Shown here: positions 581 through 46,563 of the stretch, one piece after another | Numbering within the stretch: position 1 is the first letter of the stretch | How the letters are laid out: each line of letters opens with the position of its first letter | From: Orbicella franksi | Taxonomy: Eukaryota | DNA: 64,000 bases | NCBI GenBank assembly: GCA_964199315.1 | Contig: OZ116700.1 | Location: forward strand, 13,454,001 to 13,518,000 | Direction of reading: 5' to 3' | The notes under the pieces: generated by a model | Told to the model about the DNA's origin: nothing | The model's database searches: none | The model's input: the letters and a program-made list of their open reading frames with translations, nothing else | Translations under genes and position numbers: made by a program

Positions 581-3500
581 GCGAGAGAGAAGAAATACAC
601 AAGAAAACATTTCGAAAATGGATCAACACCAAACTAGCAATGGTAAGCCATTTCTTATTCAAGAAATATGGTGGTACAGGAAGCGTGCTACACTGTAGCT
701 GTAAGCAGACCTCCTGTGACTGTCAGACTGATAACGACATACTATAAGCTTTTGCCAACGATGTGGAGGAATTGATCTTGCCCAATCCGCCTCACTCATG
801 TTGAGTTATGATTTTTTTCTTCAGGCGGTGCCTCCGTTAGAAGTTACGGATCTTATAGAGGAGATTCGAGATGGTCACGTGCTCCTCTCTCTGCTAGAGG
901 TTCTTTTGGGGAAAACTCTGGTAAGCCTAGTTCTTGACTCCTTGTTTTCGTCTTCAGGAACCAAATAAATTTTTGCAAAAGACTTTATTCTTTTGAAAAA
1001 AAAACCCTCCGTCCCTAAGGTGTGCAAGATTGAAGGCTTATTATCCGGGGTATTTTGTACATTAGCTGTTACTCCATAAGTTTGAAAAATACCTATAGTG
1101 AAATGCGTCATCTAGAGTTCAAGAACATACTCTGGCCTGCGAGCTCTTCTGATACTCTTATTAAACCCGCGAAATATACAATGACTATTTTTAGTACAAA
1201 ATAGCAAAAACTAATGGAAGAAAACAACGAATAATAATAGTTTCGTAACTGTTCACAAGTTAGGTAAAACCACTCTTTTTCTCCGTAGTCCATATTATGA
1301 AAAAGCAGGATGCATTAAATGCTTTGATTGGTTAATCGACCCCTTTGGCCCAAGTTCCCATCGAAGGACCACTGGAAGAACTGGACTTTTGCTTCTCTGT
1401 ATTCACATGACCTTCTATCGCCGCTGATCCCAAAGTTGGATTTGAGCCTGTTACTTTTAAATGATGTTCGATTTCTTTTATTCCACAGAAAAGAGAGAAA
1501 GGTCGAATGCGTGTGCACAAACTCAACAATGTGACCACGGCATTGAAGTTGTTGGAAAAAAACAGAGTACGTCTTTTTGAGAGAAATTTAGTGGACCACG
1601 TGCACCCTTATGGGATGTATTTCGATATTCCATTGCTATTTCTGTCACTTCATCCCTCCAGCTAAGTCTTCTTCTATATGTCTCTCTATAATTTTTTTAA
1701 TTTTCTTTTTGTTTTTCTCGTTTCTGTCACTTGTTTCCGATTAAATAATCAACATTATATTCCTTTAAAGGTCAAACTTGTTGGAATCAGCAATTACGAT
1801 ATTGTTGATGGAAAGAGCACGCCTATCCTTGGACTCATTTGGAGCATTATTCTGCGATTCCAGGTAAGGAAAGGCTGTTGCACCGCGTGTGTGTTTGCTT
1901 ATTCAAACTCCGGTTTATGCATACCTTCATTTTTACACACTGGAGGCTGGATGCAGTTTTGGATACATCTAAAGCCCTGAGCGGACTAGCCCGGGAAGGC
2001 CTCCGATTCTCATAGCCCCCAAGCAGGAGCGATGAGAAGTACAGTTTTTATCCACAGGCTATGGCTTGACGACTTGGGAATATCCACATTCTCCTGTTAC
2101 AAGCGGCAAAACTTGTGCCAGAACCGTACTCCTCCCTTTTAACATTCCTTTACTGAAGTTAATCCGAATCTACACACTGTGCGAGGTAAAATTGCTGGCC
2201 TAGCTACATGTAAGCAGAACCTTGAGGTCAACACTAAAATTGACCTTTCTTACCGTTAATTTGACGCGAGAACGTGATTACATTACATGTATTTTGGGTG
2301 AGTGGGGTTTTGTCCTCTGGATTCAGCTCAGACTTAAACAGACGTTATATAAATTTATGGTTGAGACCAAAATATTGGTATAATACAACAATTTTATGCC
2401 CTTATCTCACGAAGTAGCCCAAGGCTGCTTGTATCAACACCCTTCTTCTCTTTCCATTTTTCTGCTCACGACTCTGGCATACTTTTTAATCCCCCACCCA
2501 GGTTCAAGGTGTGATGACAGAGAATGACTCCGACTCTAGCGTCAAGGATTTTCAAGTCGAGAAGAAACTTCTTTCCTGGTGCCAGACGAGCCTCGATGGG
2601 TAAGCAATTAACCAATATTATTTAAGTCCTGTTAGTATCCCATATTATTTAATGATTAGTCATCAGGCCACAGACAACAAAAAAGTGTACTTGTTCCAGT
2701 TCCCATTTCATACAACTCTGCTTAGTTTGTTGTTATTTAAAGAAAAGCACTTATCGTAGGTGGAAATCCAATATGGCGGCGGCTTAAGTCGAATGTGTGT
2801 TTTATGATTCATTAGTTCTTTAGTTATGGCTGGTTCTAGATCAACTGACAGCTACCATCTCAGAAACAAAGGCTCACTGATAGTAAGAAACAAAAAACTT
2901 TTTAGTGATCGTAGCTAAATGCGGTGTAATTCAACTGAGACTGTCGGTGGGAGAGAATTAAATTTGAAGGTAGATTGAACCTATATACAATCTTATTTAG
3001 TTCGTTCCGCTCCTTTGATACTTTAGGATACCAATATAGTACTTTGTTTGGGTTAAGTTTACTAAATTGTGATATGAATTGTTTCCTACTATTAGAGAAG
3101 TATTCGTACTTTCAACAATAATAGGCCATGTCTTGAGGGGATTGACATTGTTTGCAGATACGAGGATGCCGTTAAACTTAAAGACTTCACTTCAAGTTGG
3201 AGAGACGGTTTGGCTTTTAACGCCATCATCCACACACACAAGTAAGTCAACTGTGGAAGATTTGTGCTTCACAAGATTAGAATATATATTTTGTTCCGTA
3301 CTGCAGCGCTAGGGCATATTTGGATTTTAAGACAACTTCCCTTTTTTTCAGACCCGAGCTATTCCGATTTGAAAGCCTCTTGCAAAACGATAACCGAGCC
3401 AACCTTGATCACGCATTTAATGTAGCTAACGAAGAGTTTTCTGTGCCGAAGCTGCTTGACCCTGCAGGTGAGACAATGTTGCTACTGTTCACGTTTATTG

Positions 3501-46563: not shown

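Follow-up and report, generated by a model that had tools for sequence, protein, structure and literature searches.

The role of the N-terminal region of dystrophin beyond the dystroglycan link is still debated, and, to our knowledge, every therapeutic micro-dystrophin keeps the N-terminal actin-binding domain (ABD) together with spectrin repeats R1–R3. According to a 2023 review (PMC10293626), dystrophin is complete in cnidarians and has no paralog in invertebrates; the review also presents the proposal that full-length dystrophin originated by fusion of a gene encoding an ABD plus spectrin repeats with a sponge-type short dystrophin (R20–24 plus WW-EF-ZZ). Here, we analyzed a stretch of 64,000 nucleotides (nt) from the coral Orbicella franksi (GenBank assembly GCA_964199315.1, contig OZ116700.1, positions 13,454,001 to 13,518,000 of the forward strand; hereafter, the window), which contains, at 581–46563 on the + strand, a gene for a giant protein with a tandem CH ABD and a long spectrin-repeat rod. 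This gene is the giant, R1-amplified member of an anthozoan family of dystrophin paralogs that consist of the front half only and end in a new conserved terminus. An earlier, sequence-only reading of the stretch knew of no description of such an architecture; our literature search found no paper describing the family either, although RefSeq already lists its short members as 'utrophin-like'.

The gene, its short relatives and their affinity to dystrophin

Between 0.6 and 46.6 kb, the + strand is dense in short open segments whose translations resemble CH domains and spectrin repeats. In our model, these segments are joined into 74 exons (581–46563; 12,509 nt, that is, 4,169 codons and the stop) with a single in-frame stop, which bears out the sequence-only reading of a single open reading frame (ORF) of about 4,170 amino acids (aa) ending at 46563. 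The tandem CH ABD (aa 1–246) is encoded in exons 1–8 (581–3831, +; 62, 96, 78, 93, 98, 84, 116 and 113 nt), with Pfam CH matches on exons 2, 4, 6 and 7; the short-form relatives described below carry PF00307. The model was produced by a dynamic program operating on GT/AG sites and codon-usage log-odds, with six CH-domain exons contributed by a second pass, and the final exon set merges two gene-finder runs and was checked for frame. Higher intron penalties in the gene finder led to loss of the CH exons. A splice from 46465 to 47006, together with about 15 micro-exons, came from a run in which the weights had been retrained and the intron penalty was low, and was rejected as spurious. The first two bases of exon 1 complete a codon, so that at least one further 5′ coding exon must exist upstream; no convincing candidate for that exon or for a start codon was found in window positions 1–580, and the start of the Acropora counterpart likewise lies outside the locus available for it (L001).

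A search with the last exon retrieved 25 relatives, in nearly all of which the match reaches the protein's own C-terminus. The named members of this tail family are all anthozoan, namely, Nematostella EDO31611, 'dystonin-like X2' and 'dystrophin-like X1' of Dendronephthya, and a Desmophyllum fragment; among the representatives, the same search yielded exon-sized fragments only and no full-length protein. In the short Acropora gene (L001), the CH-domain exons lie just ~6 kb upstream of the tail exon, and a search with the Nematostella model recovered full-length short proteins of 703–773 aa, with CH and Spectrin domains only, from Acropora cervicornis (where it is named 'Utrophin'), A. millepora, Orbicella faveolata, Porites lutea, Oculina and the anemone Actinostola. 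The automatic RefSeq label 'utrophin-like' is attached to P. lutea isoform X1, O. faveolata isoform X3 and A. millepora isoform X1. Proteins with two CH domains and spectrin repeats that lack WW and ZZ, for which the sequence-only reading had suggested looking in cnidarian proteomes, are therefore present in corals and in an anemone. The basic member of the family is ~760 aa long and comprises the tandem-CH ABD, R1, R2, R3, a fourth repeat and a tail of ~25 residues that is the same in all short forms read; WW, EF-hand and ZZ domains and a coiled coil are absent from it.

Both ends of the giant gene correspond to this short form. The 16 exons placed in L001 measure 62, 96, 78, 93, 98, 84, 116, 95, 104, 154, 182, 145, 312, 183, 147 and 249 nt; the first seven exons of the window gene have the same sizes (62, 96, 78, 93, 98, 84 and 116 nt), and its last six (145, 168 + 144, 183, 147 and 249 nt) match the final 145, 312, 183, 147 and 249 nt of L001. 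In blastp comparisons, residues 44–521 of the Porites short form (P0072) align to residues 1–451 of the model (E 1e-86) and residues 330–768 to residues 3734–4164 (E 1e-106). Thus, the window gene is the short architecture with ~3,280 inserted residues.

The ABD, the orthology of R1–R3 and the shared intron positions support the assignment of the window gene to the dystrophin/utrophin lineage. The comparisons and trees on which this rests were made without full-length nesprins, spectraplakins, or the canonical dystrophin of O. franksi itself. The top non-anthozoan matches of P0072 are N-terminal fragments of vertebrate dystrophins and utrophins (E ~1e-83, 31–33% identity, 73–82% of the query), followed by arthropod and rotifer dystrophins and then by beta-spectrins (E 1e-64 to 1e-58), for which the match covers the ABD only (31% of the query). 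Hidden Markov models (HMMs) of family R1, R2 and R3 find residues 335–432, 445–543 and 551–650, respectively, of Elephantulus dystrophin (numbering close to that of the human protein), with scores of 30, 45 and 42 bits; off-diagonal scores stay below 20, and the R2 and R3 models have no match in beta-spectrins. When all PDB sequences were searched with phmmer, exon 69 matched dystrophin 9c3c_D at 452–493, exon 70 at 502–550 and exon 71 at 558–603 (E 0.006). Exon 7 aligns to dystrophin 178–215 (1dxx, 9c3c_D) and does not separate the CH families in the PDB search; exons 9, 72 and 73 gave nothing dystrophin-specific against PDB, exon 73 having generic spectrin matches only. In the repeat tree, which was built against R1–R3, exons 69–70 (145 + 168 nt; 43482–44249, +) join the short-form R2 (SH-aLRT support 97) in a clade sister to dystrophin/utrophin R2 (SH-aLRT 86), and exons 71–72 (144 + 183 nt; 44633–45666, +) fall among R3 repeats. 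The dystrophin-like second and third repeats that the sequence-only reading placed at the very end of the gene are thus identified as such by phmmer, HMMs and tree alike, and they cluster with their dystrophin counterparts.

The exon structure leads to the same assignment. The DMD boundaries that we checked in published papers are c.31|32, 93|94, 264|265, 530|531, 649|650, 1149|1150, 1331|1332, 1482|1483, 1704|1705, 1812|1813, 1992|1993 and 2168|2169. Eight boundaries of the window gene coincide with DMD in both position and phase (c.31|32, 93|94, 264|265, 530|531, 649|650, 1331|1332, 1482|1483 and 1812|1813), the correspondence at c.1149|1150 and c.1992|1993 follows from exon length, and no shared boundary differs in phase. 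The alignment is anchored by the first residue of exon 7, which equals dystrophin residue 178, and by the ends of exons 69 and 71, whose final residues equal 494 and 604; exons 69–70 have edges at c.1331|1332 and c.1482|1483, and exons 71–72 at c.1812|1813 and c.1992|1993. Exon lengths are preserved closely: DMD exon 2 (62 nt) corresponds to 62 nt in the window, exons 3+4 (171 nt) to 174 nt, exons 5+6 (266 nt) to 275 nt with one extra intron, exon 7 (119 nt) to 116 nt, exon 11 (182 nt, c.1150–1331) to 182 nt, exon 12 (151 nt) to 145 nt, exons 13–15 (330 nt) to 312 nt and exon 16 (180 nt) to 183 nt. The earlier reading was right about the introns at the DMD 11/12, 12/13, 15/16 and 16/17 positions, published boundaries and alignment anchors being in agreement. 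Among CH–spectrin genes, the comparison of intron positions covered DMD only.

These data bear on the possibility that the gene descends independently from another branch of the spectrin superfamily, of the nesprin, spectraplakin or alpha-actinin type, and owes its likeness to dystrophin to general resemblance or to the composition of the databases. Some signals point that way: Spectrin_SYNE1 is the best repeat-specific Pfam model on some exons (below threshold), one octocoral isoform is labelled 'dystonin-like' in RefSeq, actinin and beta-spectrin are slightly better matches to exon 7 than dystrophin is, and the neighbors of the octocoral terminal module in the protein atlas are generic spectrin, nesprin and short-stop only. 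Nevertheless, we consider such an origin very improbable, given that R1–R3 are collinear and specific (30–74 bits on the diagonal against ≤20 off the diagonal and with beta-spectrin), that the top non-anthozoan matches over ~75% of the length are all dystrophin or utrophin, that eight intron positions and phases are common to DMD, and that KASH, plakin, GAR and EF-hand regions are all missing from the gene.

Composition and growth of the rod

Canonical R1, R2 and R3 HMMs were built from 25 dystrophin/utrophin fragments and every repeat unit of the window gene was scored with them. Across exons 9–68, R1 is the top-scoring model for 23 of the 27 units, with scores of up to 60 bits. The first rod repeat, encoded in exons 9–10 (4240–5215, +; Pfam Spectrin on exon 10), is R1-like (39.6 bits with R1, 7.6 with R2 and 15.4 with R3), as are exons 35–36 (60 bits) and exons 47–48, 57–58 and 59–60 (40–44 bits); by contrast, exons 69–70 score best with R2 (51.2 bits) and exons 71–72 with R3 (74.3 bits). 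Repeats of beta-spectrin and later repeats of dystrophin, used as controls, score no more than 22 bits with R1, mostly less than 12, and show no preference for it. Furthermore, a profile of the internal 182-nt exons finds dystrophin R1 as its best PDB match (3uun, E 3e-8; 9c3c_D 388–442), and a profile of the 175-nt exons matches 9c3c_D 456–494. With 23 of 27 units R1-like, it appears that the rod grew by amplification of the R1 unit. We also considered that the internal units might be chimeras of an R2 first half and an R1 second half; this was ruled out by the whole-unit HMMs together with the exon phases of the short gene.

From exon 10 on, the rod is built of 182-nt exons (phase 0 in, 2 out) that alternate with exons of ~175 nt (2 in, 0 out), each pair yielding a repeat of ~119 aa; the start of exon 10 itself is ambiguous between 5034 (giving 182 nt) and 5043, a difference of 3 aa. 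Because the exon phases are fixed, tandem duplication of the two-exon R1 unit is frame-neutral. The internal array proper, ~25 further spectrin repeats in exons 11–66 (5475–41283, +), consists mostly of such pairs, and young tandem copies are present within exons 19–30. From these features we infer that successive tandem duplications of the R1 exon pair built up the insert. In total, the insert of ~3,280 aa holds roughly 27 extra repeats, mostly R1-like, and a Glu/Arg/Lys segment of 234 aa. The latter is encoded in exon 49 (28600–29299, +), which starts like a 175-nt exon, runs in frame from phase 2 to phase 0, and translates into 43% E, 28% R and 18% K (89% E/R/K in all); by composition, it is a candidate ER/K single alpha-helix (SAH). 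The array is also punctuated by irregular linker exons on the + strand (6661–7132, 30002–30802 and 33036–33699), with boundaries taken from the model only, whose products are acidic or Pro/Val-rich, non-spectrin and without a Pfam match; these may be hinges of the rod.

The unit next to R2, exons 67–68 (145 + 182 nt; 41728–42571, +), clusters with the short-form R1 (SH-aLRT 96 and 98) and is the ortholog of that repeat, in agreement with the C-terminal blastp block of P0072, which begins at model residue 3734. The layout is, then, ABD, 27 R1-like units with the SAH among them, R1, R2, R3, a fourth repeat and the tail. The sequence-only reading had arranged the protein as ABD, R1, about 27 repeats plus SAH, R2 and R3, which holds overall but not for the position of R1, the true ortholog being at the far end of the array and not next to the ABD. 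The intron that separates exons 68 and 69 contains a 133-aa open segment (42588–42986, +) that resembles, by eye, the C-terminus of a retrotransposon ORF.

The last repeat, encoded in exon 73 and the first part of exon 74 (45746–46491, +), had been taken for dystrophin R4, an identification that we do not retain: among the canonical models it scores best with R3 (24.5 bits), and in the tree it clusters with the short-form fourth repeat (SH-aLRT 99 and 93) near the R3 repeats. A fourth-repeat HMM built from the family has no position-specific match in dystrophin, in a comparison that covered roughly the first 1,052 dystrophin residues, and we treat this repeat as family-specific. The earlier inference that the front part of dystrophin was stretched from within is upheld by the existence of a 760-aa unstretched form and by the R1-like nature of the extra units. 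The new terminus, which had been seen as part of the same remodeling, is not: the short form already has the tail, so the terminus is older than the stretching.

The 3′ end and the C-terminal tail

Stranded polyA RNA-seq reads and coral transcript contigs were placed on window positions 43400–49399. The reads show directly the splices 43626>44082, 44249>44633, 44776>45484 and 45666>45746, which join exons 69 to 73, and the contigs add 42571>43482 and 45892>46315; the last six exons are thereby confirmed. The terminal exon is unbroken from 46313 to ~47735–48012 (contig pieces 46313–48012 and 46313–47735), polyA read depth is ~50 at 47.4–47.6 kb and 0 from 47.8 kb, and no onward splice from the last exon occurs among the reads and contigs of this interval. 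Given the continuous terminal exon, the end of coverage and the lack of an onward splice, 46563 is the true protein end, and the gene closes with a 3′ untranslated region of ~1.2 kb (46564–47735, +) continuous with the last coding exon. A pattern scan of the + strand from 46.6 to 64 kb returned no WW, ZZ or EF-loop patterns, and the only Pfam matches downstream of the gene belong to a QRICH1/DUF3504 (Crypton-type) element, the remaining ORFs being without a family. On both counts the sequence-only reading was right: the exon beginning at 46315 is terminal, contains the stop and is not spliced onward, and no WW, EF-hand or ZZ exons follow.

It could still be argued that the stop at 46563 lies in an alternative terminal exon and that the main transcript continues to WW-EF-ZZ exons past the window, dystrophin genes being large and able to hold nested genes. 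We found no support for this scenario and regard it as scarcely credible, because the only joint leading out of exons 73 and 74 is 45892>46315, coverage ends at ~47.7 kb, paralogs and other species retain both the stop and the tail, and the downstream sequence is free of WW, ZZ and EF patterns. Just past the gene, at 48000–48900, summed contig depth from coral metatranscriptomes runs into the thousands (up to 18 contigs), with polyA reads nearly nil; this signal probably comes from a dispersed repeat or from an abundant non-polyadenylated RNA.

A more substantial question is whether head and tail are commonly joined in one product. The 74-exon giant might be a minor or artefactual form, with internal promoters (as in the Dp isoforms of DMD) or two adjacent transcription units producing shorter proteins. 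This possibility draws on RNA evidence that covers the 3′ end only, with polyA data that are strongly 3′-biased, and on a RefSeq Dendronephthya homolog whose 484–492-aa product contains only the terminal repeats. It is, in our estimate, quite unlikely: over the 46 kb, all 74 exons stay in frame, their phases alternate and their splice sites are good; one transcript contig holds 1,677 nt upstream of exon 69; the same RNA libraries also represent the 5′ part of the gene; and the short family members establish that a head and a tail of this kind belong to a single protein.

The C-terminal tail (46492–46563, +, including the stop codon) reads DKGYP...E-C-C-F-L-R-I-M-R-R-K-F-G-V-F-Q. Comparison of homologs reduces it to DKGYP, a few residues, an acidic residue, Cys-Cys and a hydrophobic/basic run, F-x-R-I-x-R-R-K-F. 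Across 14 homologs, one Cys is invariant and the Cys-Cys pair with the basic/hydrophobic run is near-universal, conservation extending over Hexacorallia and one octocoral. The tail of the window protein has a net charge of +4 and a hydrophobic moment (muH) of 0.61 (+4 to +5 and 0.6–0.8 in the family). It contains no hydrophobic stretch of transmembrane length such as a KASH element would have, and there is no syntrophin/dystrobrevin coiled coil, the protein stopping ~25 residues past the last repeat. In GAP-43, an N-terminal Cys-Cys/basic motif is a membrane-targeting signal, and lipid binding has been reported for dystrophin R1–R3.

We propose, with a probability of about 0.6 for the explanation as a whole, that the product of the window gene, an expressed coral dystrophin/utrophin paralog with an R1-amplified insert, serves as a tail-anchored tether or spacer between cortical actin and the membrane. 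In this proposal, the N-terminal ABD would bind F-actin; the rod would extend for ~190 nm, with ~31 repeats at ~5 nm each and a further ~35 nm from the putative ER/K helix; and the C-terminus would be held on the membrane by an S-acylated Cys-Cys pair and the adjacent polybasic/hydrophobic peptide, by analogy with GAP-43. Lipid binding by R1–R3 may add to the attachment. With the membrane reached through the tail and R1–R3, dystroglycan would not be needed.

Several observations weigh against this proposal or its premises. For four of the 27 internal units, R1 is not the top-scoring model. RNA support is limited to the 3′-terminal junctions, so that the continuity of the 74 exons is that of a frame-consistent model, and the window contains no identified start codon. 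The amphipathicity of the window tail is reached by 26% of shuffled sequences and is thus not significant alone, and in the octocoral ortholog Cys-Ser replaces Cys-Cys. The octocoral terminal module, taken by itself, has no dystrophin match in PDB. Finally, family R1 and R2 fall outside the clade formed by the canonical Nematostella and bilaterian dystrophins.

The tail could, instead, dock onto another protein, for example calmodulin or a partner in the membrane or cytoskeleton, with the cysteines in a structural or redox role and the protein linking actin to that partner. A short, basic, amphipathic peptide (muH 0.6–0.8, charge +4 to +5) is of a type that also binds calmodulin, and the octocoral ortholog keeps the basic run with only one Cys. 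An invariant Cys and a near-universal Cys-Cys pair among 14 diverged homologs, however, are more in keeping with a modification site than with one face of a helix, and no partner is known; we view protein docking as a serious but rather unlikely alternative to the tail-anchored tether.

Family history and comparison with known systems

The family is not the only dystrophin-type gene of anthozoans. For both R1 and R2, a fragment from Nematostella (P0115) falls with the dystrophins of bilaterians, so that Nematostella, at least, has a canonical-type gene in addition to the tail-family gene. The sister position of family R1 and R2 to the clade of the Nematostella canonical gene and bilaterian dystrophins fits either an origin before the fusion that produced full-length dystrophin or fast divergence after a duplication in cnidarians. 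That the family is a surviving, unfused front half of the ancient ABD-plus-spectrin-repeat gene, and not a recent coral copy of dystrophin, is a reading to which we assign a low likelihood. Separately, a transcript-derived protein of 1,319 aa (P0166) combines CH, Spectrin, WW, EF-hand_2/3 and ZZ domains and has the appearance of a naturally occurring 'mini-dystrophin' whose rod is very short.

In L001, the second half of R2 and the first half of R3 share one 312-nt exon (8270–8581), which in the window is split into 44082–44249 and 44633–44776. The corresponding intron, between exons 70 and 71, does not coincide with DMD c.1704|1705. Nor does it fall at c.1602|1603, which we take to be another DMD intron position. 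Because this intron is present in the window gene and missing from L001, it was gained or lost within the family.

A second gene of the family, noted in the sequence-only reading as a convergent paralog, was found on the – strand, where its 3′ part occupies 60236–64000. It comprises a last repeat with the same Cys-Cys tail (60236–60796), a 182-nt exon (63290–63471) and an upstream exon (63813–63998); no in-frame path of exons could be completed from 63290 to 60796, and no R2 or R3 exons were seen in 60236–64000 by tblastn, ORF scan or reading of the sequence. A locus from another species (L003, 1–10369) is similar: its 182-nt exons are numerous and are accompanied by a last repeat, a Cys-rich tail and, at the place of the unclosed gap in the convergent paralog, an acidic linker exon that is not a repeat, whereas R2, R3 and, within 10 kb, an ABD are lacking. 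This is a third architecture of the family, and the convergent paralog seems to be of the same type.

Between the two convergent genes, a region at 56146–57057 (+), with ORFs extending to ~59 kb, has QRICH1 and DUF3504 Pfam matches, the signature of a Crypton-derived tyrosine recombinase. Two long open segments at 51817–54322 (+), of 185 and 137 aa, have no Pfam match and are probably what the sequence-only reading had called an unrelated gene.

The existence of this anthozoan family contradicts the published claim that invertebrates have no dystrophin paralog (PMC10293626). Free-standing genes for ABD-R1-R3 amount to a natural experiment on what this region does without the dystroglycan complex. 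The coral rod exceeds that of dystrophin in length through copying of R1 and is a clear example of how the length of a protein can be adjusted by duplicating a repeat unit of two exons without disturbing the frame. Should the tail prove to be a lipid anchor, cnidarians would have in this family a novel means of linking cortical actin to membranes.

Among other proteins built of an ABD and spectrin repeats, alpha-actinin, with its ABD and four repeats, resembles the short family member in outline. However, its calmodulin-like EF-hand domain is absent from the family, whose repeats are of the dystrophin R1–R3 type and whose end is lipid-anchor-like, and nothing in the family points to the antiparallel dimerization of alpha-actinin. 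Nesprins (SYNE, MSP-300) are, like the window protein, giants with an ABD, many repeats and a short C-terminal membrane element, which in the coral protein is only predicted; they have a KASH transmembrane domain, whereas the window gene lacks KASH and has dystrophin-type repeats and introns. Beta-spectrin has an ABD, 17 repeats and a PH domain; the window gene lacks the PH domain, and the likeness is restricted to the ABD. The putative anchor recalls GAP-43 in its adjacent cysteines directly before basic/hydrophobic residues, but the GAP-43 motif is N-terminal and the coral tail C-terminal, there is no sequence homology, and acylation of the coral tail is only putative. The candidate ER/K helix resembles those of myosin VI, myosin X and caldesmon in its length of 234 aa, its 89% Glu/Arg/Lys content and its alternating charge runs; unlike them, it sits inside a spectrin-repeat rod.

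The closest well-characterized relatives are dystrophin and utrophin, which share with the window gene the tandem-CH ABD, the orthologous R1–R3, a long spectrin-repeat rod, and the boundaries and phases of DMD exons 2–7, 11, 12, 15 and 16. The WW, EF-hand and ZZ domains and the syntrophin/dystrobrevin coiled coil of these proteins have no counterpart in the window gene, so that binding to the dystroglycan complex is not expected. In place of R4–R24, the coral rod appears to be composed of R1 copies and the ER/K segment, and the protein ends in a Cys-Cys/basic tail. The anthozoan 'utrophin-like' proteins of ~760 aa are nearer still: they have the ABD, R1-R2-R3, the fourth repeat, the tail and the exon sizes at both ends in common with the window gene, at 38–58% identity in the head and ~40% in the terminal block, and lack its ~3,280 extra residues (~27 repeats and the ER/K segment). 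The window gene is a paralog, not an ortholog, of these proteins, a giant built on the same plan by expansion of its first repeat.

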